This document shows positions 14,901-44,200 of a DNA stretch of 64,000 bases, piece by piece. A program made the translations under genes and the position numbers. Position 1 is the stretch's first letter; every line of letters starts with the position of its first letter. This DNA comes from Asterias rubens (taxonomy: Eukaryota). Location of the stretch: positions 13,950,001 to 14,014,000 of the forward strand of contig NC_047062.1 of NCBI RefSeq assembly GCF_902459465.1. Direction: 5' to 3'. The notes beneath the pieces were generated by a model, which was not told the origin of the DNA, searched no databases, and was given only the letters and a program-made list of their open reading frames with translations.

Positions 14901-17900
14901 CAGAAAAATTCTTCTGTCTGAAGTGTTATCACTTGTTCAGTTGAATTTGAACCAAGAAGCACTTTATAACGAACCGTATGTGGAATGTTATCGATAGATG
15001 CAAACAGATATAGTATTTCTGATGTTAGTTATTTGTGTACTTACTGCGCTCGTTGAATTCCTGGGTTCTCTTGCCAAAGATAGCTCATATATTTCATCTT
15101 CAGTATACTGGAGATCAAGTGATGCCTATACAGAACAAACAAGTCCAGTTACAATCTCTATTATAGGAATAGTCAAACTGTGAGGACCAGAAGGACAAAA
15201 CCTGTGGGTCACTACAAGGACCAATTTTATTTAATTTTGTTATTATTATTTCAAAACATTCATTAAATTAATGAAAATAAACAAATTTGGTAAGAAAAAA
15301 AAAACAGCAGCTGTCAATAGTTAAAAGCATTTTGATAAAACACTTAACTTTGAAGTTATGTGGTTATGTAAAAAATAAATAAGTTTTTATGCCTCAAAAA
15401 TTGAATCTCAGATTGTGTTTTCCGGCATGGACATATTCCCTACGGATTTTCGGTGATCTTTCAAAAACGTGACCAAGTGTTTCAAATGAAATTTTCACTA
15501 GTTAGTTTTATTACATTAATATAGGATTAAAACAAACAAACAAACAAACAGTACTAAAATACATTAATATAGGACTAAAACAAACAAACAAACAACCAAA
15601 CAAACGGTTCTAAAAACCAATGGTATACCCTGCCTTTTAACACTGGTAAGATGATTTAAGGATCTGCGGTAGGATCTGAGGAGCTTTGTAATTTAATCAA
15701 GATTGTGTCTTCTACTTGTTTTGATCCCAAAGAGTATGTGACATTTTGATCTAACTTGTTTCCAGTGAAATAAAAACCAAAATATAAACTCTACAACCAT
15801 AACCATTAAAACCATTAAAGGCAGTGGACACTATTGGTAACTACTCAAAATAATCATTAGCATGTAATGGGGAGAGGTTGATAGTATAAAACATTGAGAA
15901 ACTGCTCCCTCTGAAGTGACATAGTTTTCGAGAAAGAAGTAATTTTCCACGAATTTGATTTCAAGACCTCTACAGATTTAGAATTTGAGGTCTCGGAATC
16001 AAGCATCTGAACGCACACAACTTCGGGTGTTTTTTCTTTTATAGTTATCTCGCAACTTCGACGACCAATTGAGCTCAATTTTCACAGGTTTGTTATTTTA
16101 TGCATATGTTGAGAAGACACGAAGTGAGAAGACTGGTCTTTGACAATTACCAAAGTGTCCAGTGTCTTTAAGTGTCTTGTATTAGTATTATCACTATTGA
16201 TATTATTATTATTATTTAGTGCAAAAATCTTACCCTAAGCATATTGACCAGGTCCACATTGGTCTCAAGAGGAGGTTTGGTGTTCTGTAGTTGCATCAGC
16301 TCAGCAAAGATGACCGAGAGCTGACCCATCTTACGTAGGTTGAGTTGACCGTCGTCCGTACGATCAGGAAGTGCTGTGTGGAGCAGGATCAAATCCTTCA
16401 AGTGCACACCTAAGGAAAGGAGAGAGGTTGAAGAATTTCATTTTCAGAAATTGTGTAGGATGATATTCGTTGATCATTCTTTGAAAGAGGCAAGCTAGGC
16501 CTGGAAGGAACTAGTTCTTGGAAGTTAACTATTAAGAGACCATTAATTTCAACATAATCATCACCATTTTCCAAAACATGGCAAATATATTGTTGTTGTA
16601 TTTTCATTAAAAAACTGTATTGAAAAACAATAGCCTTTCAGAAAGACTCTGATAAAATTGAATTGTCAGGCCATTGACCATTTTTTGTGCAAAAACTAAA
16701 CCAATACAAAACAGACATTTGTTGTTAAAATTGTAGCTTCTATATTTTCTATATTAACATAGCAAGATAATGACAATTGTTGGCGAAATTTGTTAGTTGA
16801 AGGTAGGTGAAATATTTTGTGGCACCCAGTGGGCCCTAAAGGGGTAAACTAATAGAGACTAAACATATGGGCCTAATGTTACAAATCTTAAGTCTTTAGA
16901 ACAGTTGGAATATTCCTCAGGGAATCTTTAACAAAAAGTAACTTGGAAAAAATAACAGGATTCTTTGATTCTATGACTATCCCAAATTTCCTGTTTAACA
17001 AAGCTGCATCTTTTAATTTTTACGAATTCACAGAGGAAGGGTCTATCCAGCCACTCCTTTCAAAAAAAAGAAACAAAATAATGAAGTGATTTGATGAAGT
17101 TTTTAAAAAGTAATACAACAGGCGTCGGTTTCACAATGAGCCAAGACTGATCTTAAAGGGTCTATGTAACTTTTGTAGGACAAAAAACACAATGTCCACA
17201 GATTTACACTAAACTTACACAGTTTGAAGATAATGATAGTAGAAAGCTTCCCTGAAAATATTACTTGCTGAGGTGCTGTAGTTTTTGAGAAATGAGCAGA
17301 CAACGTCATGAAAATAATTTTCGTCTCAGTGATTATGAGACGAAAATTATTTCAGCATGTAAAAACGTTTTTTTCATGACATTGTTTTACTCATTTTTCA
17401 AAAACTACAGCACTTCAGCAACTTATATTTTGAGGTACGCTTTGTACTATCATTATCTTCAAACGGTGTTAGTTCAATGTAAATCTGCGGACATTGTGTT
17501 TTGTGTCGAAAAAAAAGTACCCAAATCCTTTAAAACAATGTACTATGGTATACTGACAACTTATTAAAGTTGAATTTAAGTGCTTTGTGAAATCAAGCCC
17601 AGATACTAATGACAACACATTCCTTTCAAAGGTGCGCTTATTGCTTTAGGCGAAAGTTCAACCAAACCCAAATGTTCTCTCTCTTCATTGTAAGAGAAGG
17701 CGGGTTAAATCACCCTTCAGATGAGAGTATTTATAGAATAATTGGGACAAGAACTGTTTTCAAAAGCAGAGTGGAAAAAGTAATTCACCAACAATTAACT
17801 TTATCACGCTATATGCCATGATTTAATTAGTGTGCGTGTGTTATGTGTCTGGTCCCATTTGGATAAATGGATTACTAGGAAGTCATTAGGGTCTACTGTC

Positions 17901-20900
17901 TCCCTTTGTGCTTAGACATGGGAAAAAAATATGCCCGGTTTGAAAGCAAAATATCTTTAAGATCTATGAAGGGTGGGCAGGTACTGGCACGCTAGACAAA
18001 TCACCGAAATCATAAACATCTGTATACATTAATTAACAACCATGCAGAGATGAGTAACCTTATGTGTTGTGTGGTGTCCCCCCCCCCCCCCCCCCCCATA
18101 AAACAAACAAATCTTTTACTGGTTCATTCTTCATGCAAGCTTAATTGCAATCTCAATGAAAAACTTGTCTAAAAAACTTCTTGCAACTAGAATTAAATTT
18201 TCAAAGGTTTTGTTTTTAACCATCATGCCGAGATGAGTAACCTAATGTGCCCCCCAATCTATAATTGGTTCATTCTTCATGCAAGCTTATTTCTAATCTC
18301 ATTTCAAAACTCTTGTGTAGAAAACTTCTTGCAACTTTAATTAAATTTTGCAAACGTTTTTTTTTTCATGAAAATTCTTTGGATTGCATCTTCATTCACC
18401 TGAAGAAAAGAAAAAAAACATTGGGGCAGTTCGATTTCAATGTGACCACATAAACATTTCCAGCAGTTTTTTTCTCCCCCCCCCCCTTTTTCCCCCCTCT
18501 AATCTTTTTATTCCAAATCTAACATGCAAAGTACACCAAAATATAGACAAATTTTACACACATGAATCAGGCATGCAACTGCAGTTTCAGAAGAAGACAA
18601 AATTGAAACCAAAATTGAGCAAACCAGCTGATCAGCTAAAAAGGTTGCAAATGTATGAAAGCAGGGTGTGGTGCCAGTGTTTTTCAAATTGACCATATCG
18701 CGCAATAAACCCTTCAACTTGTGCACCAGCAGAGCATTCCGAAGCATTTCATAGAAAAACATCTGCCATGCATAATTAGCTGTAAACAATTCTCAACAGT
18801 GAGGCAATCTCTAATGGGAATCGTCACGGTATGTTAATTTACTTAACACTGACTCTGACACTCGCTTGTCTTTCTCCGTAATTTTTCATGGACCAAAAAA
18901 AAAAAAGAGAGTTGCCATTTGACAGCACTCTGACTAAAACAAACAATGCAGTTTTACAAGTGTTTCCTCAATATACTCAGCACTGTTTACCCGCAAAAAA
19001 AGAAGGGGAAAAATGAAGGAAAAAAGAGGCAGCTGTCATTTGCATTCACTGACTCACAAAATAAGCCAAGCACAATTCACAACATTGGCAATCTATTTTG
19101 AGGCGGCGCAGAATTCCATGTAAAATGGTATATGACACATGGTTTTATTCACACAAGGTTCATAAAAAGCACTTCAGTCTGCGAGCAGGAGAGAGCGTGC
19201 TAGAGAGGGATGAAGAGGAGAGACAGCGCTGGTAGGAAATAAAAATGTCAAAGTGCATTCACCACAAAAAAAACAAATGCAAGCATCATGCGTTTTCCTG
19301 GAGAACACAAAAACGAACTCTGTCTATAAAAAGGAAGGGAAAGAGCACAATAGAGACAAGTGGACTGTGACATGTCATTTTTAACCACAAACACCTGTTT
19401 CTGAATATTATGAATGATTACAAACATGCAACAAAGAGGAGGAGGATTTCATGCACTAAAAATAAAAGATGAATAAATGTTCAGGCGTATCGACGGTCTA
19501 AAAAGTTGAGACTGCTTACCTCTTTAGATTAACAGCCACAAAGAAGAAGAAGAATGTAGGAAAAGAACAGTGGAGGAAACAATAGAGGGTTAGTTCATTA
19601 GGAAGAAATACAGATTTTTTTAAATGGAATTTTGAAGTCCTGGTCTTTTGCTGCCACCCCATGTACCCACTGCCCAATCAATCTATCTTCAACCATAGCC
19701 ATACTATATGACACGCAAACATCCATTGGAGTTTGAACACTAAATAGTGACCGAATCAATGCGCCAAGTATCATAATATGTTCTGAAAAATCTCTGTAAA
19801 TCACAAATTTTAAACTACTCTAAGGGAGTGTCAACAGAGGGTCCAATACTACACTTTGGGATTTTGACCCTCAACTTTCTTGGAGTTGCATCAAGCGACC
19901 GTGAGACTTGTTTGCACTACTAAACGATTTGAAAGGATTACTACGGCGCTTCTATCTTCGGTGAGGCACACCCATAGATAACACCTACGGTGATACTGAC
20001 ATTCCTTTCTGAAAGTCAAAACTAATATTCTCAATATAGCATGCATTCCGAGTCCTCTATCATTATATCCTTTGACCCTGACATGGGGCAGGAGAATTCT
20101 TTGAGAGATGGGTGGGATAGGGTTTGATTGCAAATAAAGTCAAAAGAAGTTGTGAACATTTTTGAAGCGTGTGGAGATAATTGACTATAAAAATAGTGCA
20201 ACTTTTCATGTATCTGAGGGGTAATCTTTACAGGGTCATAGTGCATCCAGGCACCGATCCACAAGTTCTACCTGCATGATAAATATTTGTTTTAAAGTAA
20301 GGATATTACATGGACGGCATAAGCTCTAATACAGATTTCAGGCTATTTAATCAAAACAGTTCAATTTTTTTCCAAAGACAAAAAAAATAAAATTGAAAAA
20401 TAGACAAAAGGAGGACGAATATCGCACCTGGTTCTAAAAGGGAAGAGTTTCCAGCCCCGCCTCCACCCCCCTCCCCCCCAAAATATATGTAAATAAGAAT
20501 AACTCAAAACCTGTCATTAATGATCACGTCCTCGGCAAAAAGCTAAGTGAGAATAATGCTTGTCCAAATAACGGTGGGGAAACCAAATACCAAACACAAA
20601 ACAAAAAAAACATACAAGAATTAAAAATCATCCACAAGGTTTATATTCCATCCTCATGGTTGTCCACGTATCGAAGAGGAAAAACAAAAAAGCAAATATT
20701 CAAGAATTGAAAGTCACCCACAGGGTTATATTCCATCCTCCATCCACTATAAACGTGAATAAAGATACAGAGAGATTAAGACACCGGGCAGCCGCAATCT
20801 CCATGGGAATCAACGAGTGGGCGGCAGAATATTGTAAGCTCATTGTCTAGGTTTGAGATAAGTATCAGTGAAGTGCATAGATTGACCCTGACTGAGAAAA

Positions 20901-23900
20901 CATGAAGATTACTCACAGGATTGGGATCTTGAAACCTCGTGCTTCCTGCAGCGCCTTGCGGTAGTTGCTGAAATTACATGCAGAGGAGAGCAACTCGGTC
21001 ATCTCTGATATCGTCTGTTTTACGATAAAAAAAAATGATAATGAAAAAAGTTGCTTTATGCTGAAAAAAGCAAGGCTATTTAATACTGACTACATCTGAA
21101 GTGGAGTGGTGATTTTCAGAGTAAGGAGTTTTGAGGTCAACTAATTAATTTGTCGATGACCAACAGAGTTGTTGAGAAAAATCCATAGCCTGTAGCTGCT
21201 GACAACCCAAACCTGCAAAACAGAATGACCTCTCTCTCTGTAACTTTTTATTTATTAATAAAATTGTCAAGAATCACGGTTAACAAAATAAAAAGACAGT
21301 TACAAAAAAATGAGGCATGCAATATGATTCTTTCCTTGGACTTAAAAAAAAGGGTAATAACAGGAGTAAACCTTTTCAGATATGTATTGGAAGGTTTGCA
21401 TGTTAACACAATGACTGTACCTCTTAAGGGCTACAGACATATTGGCTCATGGAATGGCAAAAATACAACACAACATTGTTTTAAGCAGTAGGGACCTATG
21501 CTCTAATTCTCACAAAATAAAAACCCACGTTATTCCGGAGGTCGTTGGTTCGAATCCCACTCTAGTCAATTCTTTGTTCAACCCCAAAAATCATTTCAAA
21601 ATTTACCCAGTCAGTTTCCCTTGTGGTTTCTATTGATAAAATATAAAAAACCCGTACAACTCTTTAATGGCACTGGACACCTTTGGCAACTTTCACTTGG
21701 TGTATCCCAACATGTGCATAAAATAACAAATCTGTGAAAATTTGCACTAAATTGTTGGTCATCAAAGTTGCAAGTGAATAATAAAAGACAAAACACCCTT
21801 GTTTCACAAATTTGTGTGCTTTCCAGACGCCTTAAAAAAGGCTTCAGGCCTGAAGTCTTTTAATGCTTGAGGGAAAATTTCCCTCTTTTCTCAAAAACTA
21901 CGTTACTTCAGCGGGATCTGTTACTCACAATGTTTTGTACTATCAACAGCTCTCCATTGCTCAGGACACCAAGTAAGTTGTTTTATGCTAACAATCATTT
22001 TGAATAATTACCAATAGTATCCAGTGCCTTTAACAGATGCTTTAACCAAAATCCCTCCCTAAATCAAATGGCCTCATAATTTGACAAATTTGAAATACCT
22101 TTTGAGTGTCCGATGAGACATAGGCGAGAGTTTGTCTGAGTCTCGCCAGTGAGCTGTGACTCAATCCTCCAACTACAGCCATCAAGGTGTTAAAGTTATT
22201 CAGCCGTTTTAATCTCTATAGGATAAGAGAGCAATTCCAGAAATAATGTCACCCCAACAAATGTTCGCTGGTTATGCATTAACATTTCTTAGATTGTACG
22301 AATGAGATGATAAAAAAACACTGTACACTGCCATGGCAATGCAAATAAAATTCAGGCCATATCCAAATTTGCGGCTATGTCTATGGCTCTTGCATTATGA
22401 CTTTGAGATCCAGCCATAGCCGTAACTGCCAATATATGGACACAGCCTTTACTGGAGGCTAGGAGATTTATAACAGAGATTTAAAACACACTTGGCAACA
22501 TTCAAGTACAATGATGCATCATGAATAAAACAGCCCAAAATCAATTTGAGACCTTGTTATATACATTATTTTTAAATGTTCAATGCTTACATCATATAAC
22601 CAGCAAAAAAGAGGTTTGAAAATGTGTTAATTAATTATTTTTTGGGTTTAGTAGAAATCAGGCAAAAACAGGAAGTTTCATCCTAAAAAACTTCCAATAG
22701 ACTATGTCAAACAAATTGGGCCATTTTGGGACCCCTTTGGTCCCATTTTCATTGCTTTAATGTGAAGAAAACAAACAAACTCATACAAATTAAGGGACCC
22801 ATTGTTTTAATATGCATGAGACTACACAGTCTATTCAAAAAGGGAGGGAGGGAACAGGAAAAGTAAGCATATGGGATAAATTGCAAGGACTAGAAATAGT
22901 GGGTTCACTGACCTTTGAGACTTCAACAAACTTGGTGATGACCTCTGCCCTCTGCTTGGGTGTATGTCTACTGAGAATCATACATTGTATCCATAGTGAT
23001 AGTCCATTAAATAGACCAATGGAACGTTCCAACTTGAGATTGTCCTTCAGCTGACCAGAGAGGGCGTAACTTTTCAAGTCTGCAAACTAAAAAAAAGAAG
23101 AAAACACAGCTGTTTACAAAGTCAAAGACAAGGTAACACATATACAAAATTTAAACAGACGCATACTATAGTTAATTGTCCATACTATAGTTAATTGTCC
23201 ATCTCTTTACTCTCAGACACACCACAACTCATGAGTCATATACCGTAGAGAGTTCTATGTAAATAACAAATTTCAATATAGATGATTAACTGTCAGAAAA
23301 TTGACATGTGGAAAAAATCCAAACAAACAAACAATTTGTGAAAACAACCATTGGTATACTTGTACCCATGCAAACTTAAATCCAAAGAAGCTTTTAGTTC
23401 TAACAGAGAAGTGTGGGGGGGGTGATAGAAATCATAAAAAAAAGGTAAGATTCTGTTCAAGACCCTGAAGCAGAGTCTATCCTTTGAATGTAATTTTGTA
23501 AAAAGTGGCAATTGCTAGCAGAGTCGTTGACCAATCTGTATGACGAAGCAGAGTCATTTGACCCCAATTAAGTCCTTTAAACCCAGTAAACCCTAGCCGA
23601 GTCGTTTGACCCCAGCAGAGTCATTTGACTGTAGCTGAATTGTTTGGTCATTGCAACTAAACAAATACAAATATATTAATGTAATTTTGTATGTAATAAA
23701 AATTCAGTTCAGCTCAACCACTTTTCTGAGCAGTTCCGCAGTTCAACAATGTAGCAAGCACACTTACATTTAGTCTTCTGAAGATTTTGTATTCAAGGAA
23801 TGTAAGATGATTGGCCAGTTCACCAGGTTCAAGGTGATTGAAGACCAGCGAGACTTTGCGATTGGTCCTCATGGAAGGATTCCGTACTGAAATGACCCGC

Positions 23901-29282: not shown

Positions 29283-32200
29283 TTTTTTTTTTTTGGGGGG
29301 GGGGTCGGGATTTTGGAGGCAGTGGCTAGATATTGGTTGTGGGTGGGGATTGTTCAGTGTCATGCCATTCATTTGTGCATTTTGTATTATTTCTTGGGCA
29401 GAGGAGGGGGGATGAAAAGGTTCTTAGCGTGGTAACCATTTCCCTTGGAAGGTGAGATCATATAGTTTCGTGCTTAGCTTTATTTCCATTTATTTTAAGG
29501 CTTTCTAACCTGGGTACAATAGATACATCAATAAAATGCACTATAAATAAAAACCATTACAACTGGGCACATTATTCACTATTATTGTTGTGAACTCGGC
29601 CTGCATATTTACTGTAATTTTGTGTTGAACATCGATATAAATATGAAGGTGATCAATTTACTACAAAACACTCTTTACCGAGTGGGTAGGATGAATGTTG
29701 GACTGTATAATATAAATGCACCCACGTCAGTTTGACTTTCAAACGTATTTACTGATCAAGCAACGTACTACATTTTCGTGGGTGAAAAAAAAATAAGTAT
29801 ACTTTATTCTGGTGTTTGGGGTCAATAGAGATGTGATACGTGCCTGCGATCCGTTCATTTAAGAAGGGTTTTTATCTCATTACAATTCCATAAATAGAAG
29901 TCAAAAACATTTCATTGAGCATGAGTGACAATGAATCCTTCGACTGGAACAACTAATAATCTCTGTGCTTTCTGCTGTCCACCTGATCTGAGTTCTTTAC
30001 AGCGAATTGATGAATCGGATCCTAGATAACTTGTTGTGAAAGATGCAATAAAACTGCAATAACTGCTGCATCCTGGTGATATTTGGAGGTCATTGTTTGA
30101 GGGGGGGGGGTTCTTTGGCGCAATCTACAGTCTCATGTTTCTATCAATCTCCCTCTACAGCTCTCTCAGGCAAAAGAGTTGATACGACGACTCCGGCCTC
30201 GCGATGCATGATGATAAAAGGACAGCTTTTTTCCTCCGCTATGCTTGTTCACCCAATCCAACCAAGTTTACACTCACGGCTCATAAATACTAGCATGATC
30301 TACAAAGAGGGAGACTTGGAAGCGGAGCCCTTCATAGCGAGATGGAAAAGGTCACCAGGGAAGGAACAAATCAAGGCTGAGTGTAACGTAGAAAGCATTA
30401 TTGATTGTAGAAGTGGTTCATTATGATATACAGTATGCATACTTTTTGACGCAGGTTGATTTTGACAATTGTGTCTTGGTGCTGGTAAGCTAAAAGGTAA
30501 TTAGCAGGCCTGATACTTCACGGAGGCAACAAAACGATTTCCTCCATGCCCTTTGGTCATTGCCTTTGTGCCGCTGAAATGCTCCAGTAGAAATTTACAA
30601 CATTTCCTCATAGAGGTGCCCTTTGCCAAGGAGAAAATGCCTTGGTGCCCTTGCCCTTTCCTTTCAAAAACAAAGCATACAGGCCTGAATTAAATATATA
30701 TAAAAAAATAAAAAAATAAAAACAAAAAACACATAATGTAGGCTTTTATTCTGCAAAATCATATTTACACAATAATGCAAAGTATGAAGTCTCAATAATG
30801 TATGATGGATCATTAAGCAAGGGATTGCTGCAGCCGATATGGTTGGCAGCCATTTTGAGTACAGAGTCCAGAATGAAAGAGGACTCAGATAAGTTGAGCC
30901 ACTAACAGCTCTCTGTACAGGAAGGCTCAACTTTATCATAAAACAAGCCTACAAGCTGTATCCAAAAACATCAGAGAAGCAATAATAAACTGTAAGTTTG
31001 GTACAAACATGGAGGCAGAAAGAGAAGAAGAGGCTGATCAAAAGTCCAATGCCGAGGTTATAAGTACAACAATGGCCATAAGAAATTGTGTGATATGAAA
31101 TAACCTGCAAAATCCAGATATAAAGCTGTAATGGTCTGTGGACTTGCTTGCACATGTGCAAAGACAATGGAAAAATAAAAAGTATCTGCATGCAATTTGC
31201 ACAAATCGAACGGATACATTAGCTGGTGCAGTGGGAGAACTCAAGTGCCGGTTCCAGGTAATTAAGTGTAGAAAGCCGTCTCATAGCATTAGACTCTGCG
31301 CAGAAATGTCCATAAAATCCGCAGTGATCAGGGCCCAATTTCATGGCTTTTCTTACCACAGAGTTCTGGGCTTACGGAACCCTTGTAGCACACAATTCTA
31401 GGATACGTAAGCGCAGAACTCCACGGTAAGCAGAGCCATGAAATTGGGCCCTGCTGAGGGTTCAATTGGATTTGAAAATAGCATTCCCCAAATGCAAATG
31501 AGCTTAATTGGCTATGGTCTCTCAATATGTTTCCATGTACTAAACTGCGCCAATAAAGTATCTAAACACTTACACATGGTCAGATATATCGGAACCTGAA
31601 ACAGTATGCCACAAAATAATTATTCATTTCCAGTCACCGTTAATTTCTGCACATTTTGACACATCTTGTGTTGCGCTACGATGTTGTTTGGTGGATTTAC
31701 GGGCACTTGAGTGGCTTAAGGTCGAATTTCAAAAGTTGCAAAAGCCCCTATTCAAGCTAAATCGTTGTATTGTGACGAGTAAGATCGGCGTTTCTTTTGC
31801 TTGCCTTGTATAAATGATGTTTTTTTGGTCGCGTTTTGGATAAATCGGTTGCGATAAACATACTCACCAATAATTGTCAGTAACCAAGCAAAGGGGTCAA
31901 AGATGGGAGGCATACAACAATGGTAAGACAGGGAAAGGTGTTTCAAGATAACAGGAAAGATGGCTCAAACGACCAAACAGGAAAGAGGACGGATCGTTGG
32001 TTTGATAGAAGCCGGTACGTCGATGCGAGCTGCAGCTCATCAGGTAAAAACGTCACCAGCGACGGTCAGTAAATGGTGGAATCGCTACCAAGCTCAGGGA
32101 AATGTGGACGACCTGCCAAGGAGTGGCCGTCCGATGGTGACTTCTGCAGCAGAAGAAGAAAGTGAACAAGTCCATAAAGCCTGACACCACTCTCGAGGGG

Positions 32201-41200: not shown

Positions 41201-44200
41201 CAAAATCATTTGGAGTAGCTTTTGATGTGCCACACCCCTTATTTGTGCATTTTTTCATCTCATTTGAGAGGCAATGATTCTAAGTGGGGGGGGGTATGCT
41301 AGGTTTGCCACTTCTTACTAGACAAATCTGGTGCGAGGCAAAAAACCTCAGTTTAGATGGACACAATTAAGAAGAAACGGTTGTACCCTTAAAATCTGTA
41401 GAAGCCACTTTAAAGAACAGCGGAGAGGGTGATTGCTGACAAAAAGATCTAAAACCAGGATCCAAACTTTAGGAGGTGTGTTGAAATAGTGGCATTTCTA
41501 CATTAAGTTTAAGATTCCAAGGAGTTTGAGAACACTAGAGAAGTATATAAACGAGCAACATTTTGTAGTATCTGAAATAAAAAACAGCTGTGTTTTCCAC
41601 CAGGCACATATTAAAAAAGTCTTTAGTTTCTCATCAAGTAAAGAACTGGACAACAGCAGCTGGAAAGGCTGAGGGTCAGAATTTTAGCCATAATCTCAAA
41701 AACTTGCTGGAAATTGTGAAAAGTATGACTTTCAAAATCCTCATTTACAAAATGATCACACATAAATAAAAGATGAAGACTTTCTAAATTCAGAACAGAG
41801 ACAAGATACACCCAGGCGTCCATTTGGCTAACACCATGCTGAGGAGTGAAATTGTTAATGGCTTATCAGGTTATTAAAATAACATACTAGGAGTGTAATT
41901 TTACATGAGTGAACATTCTTAGAAAATGGTAGGAGGGTCAATGAGAAAAAGCACCCTGGAACCAACCTCATTCACAGGGGTTGACAATCTCGTTGTGCCG
42001 TTTGTTCCCAAAAAGCACTGCATGCTCCGAATTATAATACATATATATATATTCTTTTGTTATCCCCTTTAAATTTGTTTATCTTGTCTCATTTGTTGAC
42101 AGTAACTGTTTCCACCATTCAACAAATTAAGTAAATTCAATATTTATCAAAATATTTCCACAGAGAAAATTGTCTACATACCTGAGCCCATGGCATATTC
42201 TTCTCTTGTATTGATTGACTTGACAATTGGCTGAATCCGGTCTGTGTGAGCAGGACGATGTGGTACATATTGAGTTATTGCACTGTTTGTATGTAAGAAG
42301 TGAATTAAGGAGGCAAGTAATTATACACAGAAGATAAAAAGATGTTTCTCCATCACACTTCTAACTTTGTTTATATCACACATGTATACATGCTAGACCG
42401 GATGACCAGTCTTCCCCTGACCATATTCTTCCTCCATGCCCTGACTCCAAAAGGAGTAAACCAAAAGGGAGCAGTATGCCGAGTATGAAGAATTTCTCAT
42501 AATTGTGCTGTGCCATTTAAAAGTGTCCATCCTCTCGGCGAACCATCCAAATTGATAAGCCATCCTAGGAATTGCATTAAATGAAGAATTTAGTTTTTGA
42601 AGAGAAAGGATATAAGTCCAGAAACTGCCCGGAGAGTTCTTTGGACGAGGTGAACCACTTGTGCATCCGGAAAACCACTTTTGGGAAGGGCGCTGAATCT
42701 TCCAGAATGCCATTCTCATCTGCAATGAACACAATTAGATATAGAGATAATTAATAATATAAAACATACAATAGTAACACAGCTTCAAAACAAAAAGGTG
42801 GTAGGATTTTTTTTTTTTTTTTGCAGCCCTTATTTGTTTCTCAGTTGTGGCTTCATAGGCCTTATCGCAAATACTGGGTATGTGCGCAGTAGGCGTGGAA
42901 AGGTGTATGCTGGTCTAGCTAGTGACCCGACCCTATCGCTAGCTAGACCAGCTTGCACCTCATTCAACAGCTAGTGCTTGCGCAATGGGCATATTTTGTG
43001 AAAAGGTCTATGGATTCCAGATCTTTTTGTATATTGTTTTCAATACTCAGTTTTTAAAATTATTTTTGTTTTATTGAAAATAATAATAATAATTATAATA
43101 ATAATATAAAACTAAAAAAAAAACAAATAAAAGCAGGCAACTGGCCGAATTGCACAAAGCACAAAATTGGCAACTTATGGTGTAATTACATTCCTACAGC
43201 ACTCGTGCCCACTTTTACAAAGTAGGTCATCATGACGAGTTCAGTCAGGATCTAGGTCTGGTTCATTTTATTCCAAAAAAATCGGGGGGGAAAAGAGCAG
43301 GAAAATAAAATAGGGTCGGACACTTTATTTGAAGTGCTCTTACATGCGTACCTAATAGTTGTAGGACCCATTCAATCCCAACAACTCACTTGGAAGACGA
43401 TAGCCTGATTGTAATGTTTACCTCAAAAACAAAACCGTTCGTCAATTAACTCCCTACCCCCATGGATGTCGACTAGGTTAAAACAACAACCGAGTGACGT
43501 CATTGGTGAATTATATTACAGCGCTGGCAAATATTTGTGTTCAATTTGGAGGAGATTGATCTCATTTGTCTTTATGGGTAAAGTCCTTTACTCCAAAGAG
43601 TTGAACAGTCATTTATCAGTATCAAGGTCAATAGTTTCAAGGTTAGGACCACATTATTTAATAAAATAGTCAGACATCAAGGCCCCCTACTCTGGAATAA
43701 GCTTTAAGGGGAATGTAGTACATTATTTTCTCTACCAGCCAGGCTCCAAGTGGATGATACCCATGTCTACATCCTTATGAACTGTGAAGGTAACATTATG
43801 TTTCAGCCCCAGGGGTGCGTAGGTGGCAACCTGCCCCCCTGGTGACAGTTGATTTTGGTTGACAGCCCAAATCATTTAAGTGTAGCCCTCACCTTAAAGT
43901 GGCTGTACTTGGCCTTGTGATTTAAAGCGACATCTCATAAATCTTTTTAAAAAGAAACCTAAGCCCTTTTTTTTTTTAAACTAAGTTAAATTCAAGCCAT
44001 GATGATCTCTGGTAAAGTTATCTTATCTACTTTGATTATCTTTGGTTTTTAGGCACTGTATATTTATTATTTCCATTTTATTTATTCATGACTCCATAAT
44101 TGGAATTGAGCCATAGCCAACAATCATGTTGTACATCAACACCAAGCTATGTTACTTCATGGTTATCATTGCTACCATTCTATCAACAGATAGATGCGGC

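Follow-up and report, generated by a model that had tools for sequence, protein, structure and literature searches.

The window analysed here, 64,000 nucleotides (nt) of Asterias rubens DNA (contig NC_047062.1, positions 13,950,001 to 14,014,000), carries on its minus strand, from about 50039 to 8764, a RasGRP3-like gene, and this study concerns the junction between exons 9 and 10 of that gene, where two bases, the AG at 19521-19520, appear to form an exon of their own. Protein representatives were searched first and their homologues next, which pointed to echinoderm RasGRP3-like proteins and to RefSeq XP_033624518.1 (P0159, 817 amino acids), which matches the exons in the window at about 100% by tblastn. 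Pfam places RasGEF_N at residues 43-148, RasGEF at 209-384, EF-hands at 477-530 and C1 at 544-595 of this protein, and the resulting order of an REM (RasGEF_N) domain, a Cdc25-type RasGEF domain, an EF-hand pair and a C1 domain is that of the RasGRP (CalDAG-GEF) family. The Leu356/Gly357 junction falls within the RasGEF catalytic domain, and the translation of exon 10 matches the solved structures of RasGRP1, RasGRP4 and RasGRP2 (E 2e-12 to 4e-8).

An out-of-phase junction in the catalytic domain

Exon 9 ends in phase 2, reading ...AAG ATC CCA ATC CT|GTGAGT with its final base at 20917. The acceptor of exon 10, cctttccttAG (16411-16410), is followed by GTGTGCAC, and no other start is possible for this exon. 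The frame of the family motif GVHLKDL opens on the G (16410) of the acceptor AG, and an exon 10 that begins at 16409 needs one base from upstream. Each junction was checked against P0159 for a split point at which the protein is preserved and the intron ends are legal. A GT-AG solution exists at 13 junctions and an AT-AC solution at one, and the exon 9/10 junction has no canonical solution: no direct GT-AG, GC-AG or AT-AC join of the two exons yields the annotated protein. Five direct joins are consistent with the protein, and their ends are of the kind GT..TT or TG..CT.

Once the AG at 19521-19520 is included, a model of 17 exons, with 15 GT-AG introns and one AT-AC intron, gives the 817-residue RefSeq protein exactly and reads ...CCAATCCT AG GTGTGCAC across the junction. 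Omitting it leaves an 18-letter frameshifted reading that ends at a TGA 15 codons on. Without two retained bases, neither the reading frame nor exact agreement with the annotated protein is obtained. The original prediction, made from the letters of the window, had described the phase mismatch and held that the AG at 19521-19520 is required to keep the RasGEF domain in frame; every letter and coordinate that it gave is present in the sequence, and the exact agreement of the model with XP_033624518.1 bears out the claim.

Other ways of completing the frame were sought within the gene. The 4507-nt interval between exons 9 and 10 holds 12 AG-NN-GT sites, and only that at 19521-19520 supplies N-G (AG-NG-GT); the other 11 were rejected because they do not. 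An upstream donor, CGAG|GTTTCA, joins GTGTGCAC in frame but removes FKIPIL(G), a motif that the annotated protein and all orthologues retain, and it was rejected as well.

We conclude, with a probability of about 0.88, that the AG at 19521-19520 is a real, and most likely constitutive, 2-nt internal exon of the A. rubens RasGRP3-like gene (Table 1). The site reads ctaaAG|AG|GTAAGC; the flank upstream is AATCTAAAG, followed by AG, and the downstream intron, intron B, opens with GTAAGCAGTC. Canonical signals lie on both flanks (a branch point, a pyrimidine tract and AG on one side, GTRAGY on the other), as in micro-exons, the class of exons of 30 nt or less. The AG-free tract, at 118 nt, ranks among the longest 0.15% of AG-to-AG gaps on the minus strand and is the second longest among the 15 GT-AG acceptors of the gene. 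The second AG of AGAG, choice of which would leave an exon of zero length, carries a disfavoured G at -3.

Table 1. Features of the exon 9 to exon 10 region, in positions of the window
Feature	Position	Strand	Remark
Exon 9	20917-21014	-	98 nt; codes 32 residues + CT; phase 2 before GTGAGT
Intron A	19522-20916	-	1395 nt, GTGAGT...ctaaAG; position common with protostomes
AG-free pyrimidine-rich tract	19524-19639	-	68% C+T, ahead of the micro-exon acceptor
ACTAAC, candidate distal branch point	19589-19594	-	branch A 68 nt upstream of acceptor G
Conserved island	19512-19567	-	56 nt, 75%, E 3.6e-4, Asterias versus Acanthaster introns
Acceptor AG of intron A	19522-19523	-	sequence
2-nt exon AG (proposed)	19520-19521	-	third base of Leu356 (CT-A) + first base of Gly357 (G-GT)
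Donor GTAAGC of intron B	19514-19519	-	with exon, AG|GTAAGC = near-consensus U1 site
TGCATG (RBFOX-type hexamer)	19450-19455	-	66 nt downstream of micro-exon; position not conserved
Second TGCATG	19425-19430	-	91 nt downstream of micro-exon
Intron B	16410-19519	-	3110 nt, GTAAGC...ccttAG; seen only in sampled deuterostome invertebrates
Exon 10	16234-16409	-	176 nt; begins GT GTG CAC; (G) + RasGEF residues
TGA	16364-16366	-	in frame when the 2-nt exon is omitted (spliced model)

Conservation and proposed origin of the probable two-base exon

For comparison, annotated loci were fetched from Acanthaster planci (L005), Diadema antillarum (L006), Ptychodera flava (L007), Branchiostoma belcheri (L008) and Antedon mediterranea (L009), which together with Asterias make up a set of six species from three phyla, with starfish from two orders. 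The phase mismatch is present throughout: in all five other species the upstream exon ends in CT| or TT| before GTRAGT (phase 2), and the downstream exon follows a YAG, with the G at the first position of the Gly codon (phase 1). Each of the six orthologous intervals, which measure 1.6-7.6 kb from exon 9 to exon 10, contains exactly one AGAGGTRAG, preceded in every case by an AG-free pyrimidine-rich tract of 38-118 nt and, in the five other species, by a branch-point-like motif 41-69 nt upstream of the site. By chance, one AGAGGTRAG would fall in every one of the six intervals with a joint probability of about 1.7e-11. Outside these intervals the motif has only three matches in about 604 kb (both strands of the window and the loci, 302 kb), with preceding AG-free tracts of 2-8 nt.

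Sequence comparison within the introns points to the same place. The only significant intronic match between Asterias and Acanthaster is the micro-exon element itself (the conserved island of Table 1), and the invariant block of the six-species alignment is AGAGGT.AG. All six genes in which the two bases stand apart from exon 10 (split genes) have A as the first base of the exon, though the position is synonymous in five of them; in unsplit genes it is G, A or T. This invariance despite synonymy indicates selection on splicing rather than on coding. The original prediction had named conservation of the intronic site as a check, and the site is indeed conserved, together with the phase mismatch, in these six deuterostome invertebrate genomes. 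We also considered the island as a repeat or a non-coding RNA and rejected both, since it has no second copy in the window, no Rfam match near threshold and no stable fold (z = +1.36). As a separate observation, TGTGG(C/T) or TGCGGT occurs 12-20 nt upstream of the micro-exon acceptor (about 19533-19538 of the window, minus strand) in the four echinoderms (4/4) and is missing from Ptychodera and Branchiostoma; a splicing element specific to the lineage is one possible explanation.

Protein evidence comes from the annotated proteins of the same set and from two transcript-derived proteins assembled from RNA runs (P0004 and P0155), all of which keep the family motif across the junction, and no annotated isoform of these species lacks the junction. 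Two other models are damaged precisely here. A Saccoglossus kowalevskii protein labelled LOW QUALITY PROTEIN (P0204, XP_077870593.1) reads IPIFSNYNSTKPGTPGVHLKDL at the junction, and a GenBank model from Branchiostoma belcheri (P0276, KAI8479180.1) begins just past it; the damage in both looks like the result of a missed 2-nt exon. That the RefSeq proteins are correct suggests that the annotation pipeline already copes with an exon of this size.

A simpler cause of the mismatch would be an assembly error, namely an AGAG collapsed at 16410 whose true form is a phase-2 acceptor, ttAG|AGGTGTG. Restoring AG at 16410 would mend the frame with the same letters, and unsplit protostome genes do read AG|N GGN. 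Nevertheless, the same acceptor, with the G of AG as the first Gly base, recurs in six independent assemblies and in five unrelated metagenome contigs, all of which read YAG|G, and the collapsed dinucleotide for which the original prediction had proposed a check was not found at 16410. Acceptors in short contigs from related animals read tccAG|GTGTC, ccacAG|GAGTT and gtacAG|GGGTG, and contigs L001-L004 and L011, which come from relatives and are too short to reach the micro-exon, have the same acceptor. An error at 16410 would furthermore leave the conserved intronic AGAGGTRAG island without explanation, and we give this possibility next to no weight.

The same mRNA (messenger RNA) letters and the same protein would also be produced by one non-canonical intron, in which the donor at 20916 is joined two bases before the usual cut (GT...TT), so that the acceptor AG stays in the mRNA; this is among the five protein-consistent direct joins. 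In the six species, however, such an intron would need the 3' ends TT, CC, GC, GC, CC and CC, which are not conserved, and to our knowledge no spliceosome class uses TT, CC or GC as 3' intron ends. The required ends thus fit no spliceosome class, whereas the AT-AC intron of this very gene has the full U12 consensus. It would also leave unexplained why the sole conserved piece of the intron is a 3' splice site abutting a 5' splice site around exactly the dinucleotide that is needed. All five direct joins (GT..TT, TG..CT and three others) were rejected on the grounds that their ends are unconserved and belong to no known class, and we judge a non-canonical intron to be highly improbable.

The distribution of the two states bears on how the 2-nt exon arose. 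The split state is found in a crinoid, in starfish of two orders, in a sea urchin, in an acorn worm and in amphioxus. Priapulus (L010) has a single intron with an ordinary phase-2 acceptor, aacAG|G GGT GTC; a single intron is also the state of about 40 metagenome contigs in which the exon is closest to annelid proteins, and these read yAG|(G/A/T) GGN. At the peptide level, arthropod-like fragments have R before GVH, which fits the unsplit state, and mollusc and rotifer fragments have S before GVH, which fits AG|T GGN and tcAG|GN alike. About 40 vertebrate-type genomic open reading frame (ORF) fragments span IPIL|GVHLKDL, with intron-like sequence at both ends; since they run through the junction, vertebrates appear to have one fused exon.

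We propose that the two bases were originally the first two of exon 10, a state that would be retained in Priapulus and in the annelid-like contigs. Intron A would be old, and intron B would have entered exon 10 after its first two bases, at AG|GT, in what was probably an early deuterostome; both introns would later have disappeared together from vertebrates. Most likely, then, the 2-nt exon goes back more than 500 million years, to the arrival of a second intron that cut the two bases off from exon 10. The direction of this change is inferred from the distribution, and the reverse history, in which intron B was lost in protostomes, is a less simple alternative. The original prediction had suggested that the exon may derive from a ratchet site. 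The splitting of exon 10 by a new intron is the more likely origin, given that in protostome genes exon 10 opens with these same two bases (N-G). Four further proteins (P0092, P0124, P0129 and P0146) are genomic ORF fragments, 43-49% identical to the full-length RasGRPs compared, and have T, L or P before GVH, which fits split-type acceptors (acAG|G, ttAG|G, ccAG|G); their source may be another lineage that has the micro-exon, possibly tunicates.

Several points weigh against a 2-nt exon as the explanation of this junction and against the history proposed for it. The finished mRNA would have identical letters, CT-AG-GT, if the acceptor AG at 16411-16410 were retained, and the sequence cannot separate the two routes. 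Inclusion of the AG at 19521-19520 in the mRNA is deduced from proteins and conservation. The outgroups are thin, consisting of one priapulid, annelid-like contigs and, for other protostomes and vertebrates, inference at the peptide level.

Probable ordered splicing and possible regulation

If the AG is an exon, removal of introns A and B would join ...ATC CT, AG and GT GTG CAC... to encode Ile-Leu-Gly-Val-His within the RasGEF domain. The AG of the 3' splice site and the GT of the 5' splice site are only two bases apart, and their simultaneous occupancy would be impossible; since the sites would not be occupied together, introns A and B presumably leave in succession, in the manner of recursive splicing. 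U1 bound at the 5' site would cover the AG of the 3' site, which would lead to sequential intron removal. Three conserved features of the site would be expected to help: the near-perfect U1 site AG|GTAAGY, the long pyrimidine-rich AG-free tract with its distal branch point, which may let U2 sit clear of the 5' site, and the weakness of the competing acceptor (the second AG, with G at -3).

This arrangement invites comparison with ratchet points, for which (Y)n-AG|GTAAGT is the signature established in the recursive-splicing literature. Duff 2015 and Sibley 2015, both in the reference list of PMC4674806, are said to have described such zero-nucleotide recursive splice sites in Drosophila and in long vertebrate genes. 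The AG could accordingly belong to a zero-length recursive site, or to a decoy, that aids removal of the interval in two steps, the frame being mended in some other way, and the juxtaposed 3' and 5' consensus that this calls for is present (ctaaAGAG|GTAAGC). A ratchet point needs only one AG, however, and two consecutive AGs are invariant in the six species, the second with G at -3. Nor do the intervals resemble the long introns known to use ratchet points, since at 1.6-7.6 kb they are far shorter. Ratchet points retain nothing in the mRNA, whereas the annotated protein is reachable here by no route other than retention of two bases. We therefore regard a zero-length site or decoy as very unlikely. 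What the RasGRP site does share with ratchet points is a 3' site abutting a consensus 5' site, which implies ordered two-step splicing with shared bases; it differs in keeping two mRNA bases, in its short introns (1.4 and 3.1 kb) and in its coding need.

Given a 2-nt exon, its constitutive inclusion is the simplest, default reading of the sequence and protein evidence. A less conservative proposal, which we consider improbable, is that the site acts as a conserved frame switch: choice of the first AG would keep the two bases and give active RasGRP, and choice of the second AG, or skipping, would amount to a zero-length recursive splice, with a frameshift and decay. Were this so, RasGRP dosage would be set by the choice between acceptors 2 nt apart and by the obligatory ordered splicing of overlapping sites, and no smaller nuclear exon, constitutive or regulated, would be on record for animals; this one would be more than 500 million years old.

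A related idea, that inclusion is a tissue-specific on/off switch controlled through RBFOX sites, with skipping leading to nonsense-mediated decay, came with the original prediction and was based on the two TGCATG hexamers in intron B. These are present where they had been placed, and TGCATG also occurs within 300 nt downstream of the exon in Acanthaster (one) and Diadema (two, as in Asterias, where they lie at 66 and 91 nt). The premature stop that skipping would bring is compatible with such a switch, and downstream RBFOX sites promote the inclusion of micro-exons in human brain (PMC4317164). On the other hand, TGCATG is only weakly enriched (5 observed versus 1.7 expected, P ~0.03), its positions are unaligned, and it is absent within 300 nt downstream in three of the six species, Ptychodera, Branchiostoma and Antedon. 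All annotated isoforms keep the junction, and the catalytic domain would need the exon wherever the protein works. The hexamers are there, and the tissue-specific switch is not supported; we consider it unlikely. Signals of the SRRM4/eMIC type, in which a conserved UGC lies upstream of the exon, are not shared by the set either: by eye in the alignment, TGC is lacking from the last 40 nt before the exon in Asterias and Ptychodera and is seen only in Acanthaster and Diadema.

Relation to known exons and other features of the gene

Constitutive exons of a single nucleotide have been documented in Arabidopsis APC11 (PMC4674806) and in Fusarium CYP621A (PMC12940212), and the authors of the former propose a stepwise, recursive-like removal of both flanking introns (PMC4674806). 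Like these, the RasGRP exon is ultra-short, lies in a conserved protein motif, is essential for the frame, has canonical flanking introns and is easily missed in annotation. It differs in having two bases rather than one, in belonging to animals and in being conserved over three phyla as opposed to one plant or fungal lineage. Exons of 2-5 bp have been reported computationally in Drosophila and human, according to the citation of Volfovsky et al. 2003 in PMC12940212. Our literature search turned up no description of a micro-exon in RasGRP, nor of a conserved animal exon of 2 nt.

With the animal micro-exons of 3-27 nt described in neural tissue, the RasGRP exon shares strong flanking splice sites, a conserved flanking intron and a position in a folded domain. 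Unlike them, it is not a multiple of three and forms no optional in-frame insert, and it is probably constitutive rather than neural-specific. It is also below the 3-nt or 6-nt floor of the RNA-seq survey of micro-exons, which left exons shorter than 6 nt out of further analysis owing to ambiguous mapping (PMC4317164). NAGNAG tandem acceptors offer another parallel, in that two AGs stand in a row and the choice between them alters the product; here, though, the spacing is 2 nt instead of 3, so that the alternative is a frameshift and not one residue, and the second AG is directly followed by a 5' splice site. The RasGRP 2-nt exon is, on these comparisons, an extreme addition to the known class of micro-exons.

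The interest of the site lies in its placing a 3' and a 5' splice site within the footprint of one small nuclear ribonucleoprotein. Its apparent use in a catalytic domain for more than 500 million years would make it a test case for how overlapping reactions are ordered, for which features suffice and for how such exons originate, and the conserved candidate features are at hand: the distal branch point, the long AG-free tract, the perfect U1 site and the weak competing AG. In practical terms, the site would account for the damaged Saccoglossus and B. belcheri models and could serve as a benchmark for aligners and for gene finders, programs that usually pass over exons shorter than 3 nt. It would also provide a clean example of intron evolution, in which an intron sits 2 nt from an older one in some lineages and is absent in others, the two having jointly disappeared from vertebrates. 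We see no medical or applied consequence.

Three further features of the gene deserve mention. The AT-AC intron (42613-42293, minus strand) has a textbook U12 signature, |ATATCCTTT...CCTTAAT...AC|, with CCTTAAT about 12 nt before the terminal AC; the preceding exon closes with ...GGACTT at 42614, ahead of |ATATCCTTTCTC, and the following one begins at 42292. The U12 5' signature CT|ATATCCTT occurs once or more in the loci of Acanthaster, Diadema, Ptychodera, Branchiostoma and Antedon and was not found in the Priapulus locus. In the B. belcheri locus (L008), the exon end and U12 5' site (GTTTATCAACCT|atatccttatct) appear at both 11840 and 12476, 636 nt apart, a repetition that suggests a local duplication or an assembly duplicate.

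Within intron B, the stretch 17258-17429 of the window is hairpin-like and gives weak matches, far below threshold, to models of plant-type microRNA precursors on both strands (45 bits versus a cut-off of 200); an inverted-repeat element is the probable explanation, and not a microRNA. Lastly, a 13.6-kb intron of the RasGRP gene contains, at 31960-32184 on the plus strand, an ORF of 74 amino acids with a transposase-type helix-turn-helix (HTH_28, E 1.4e-9), which is likely the remnant of a Tc1/mariner-like element.

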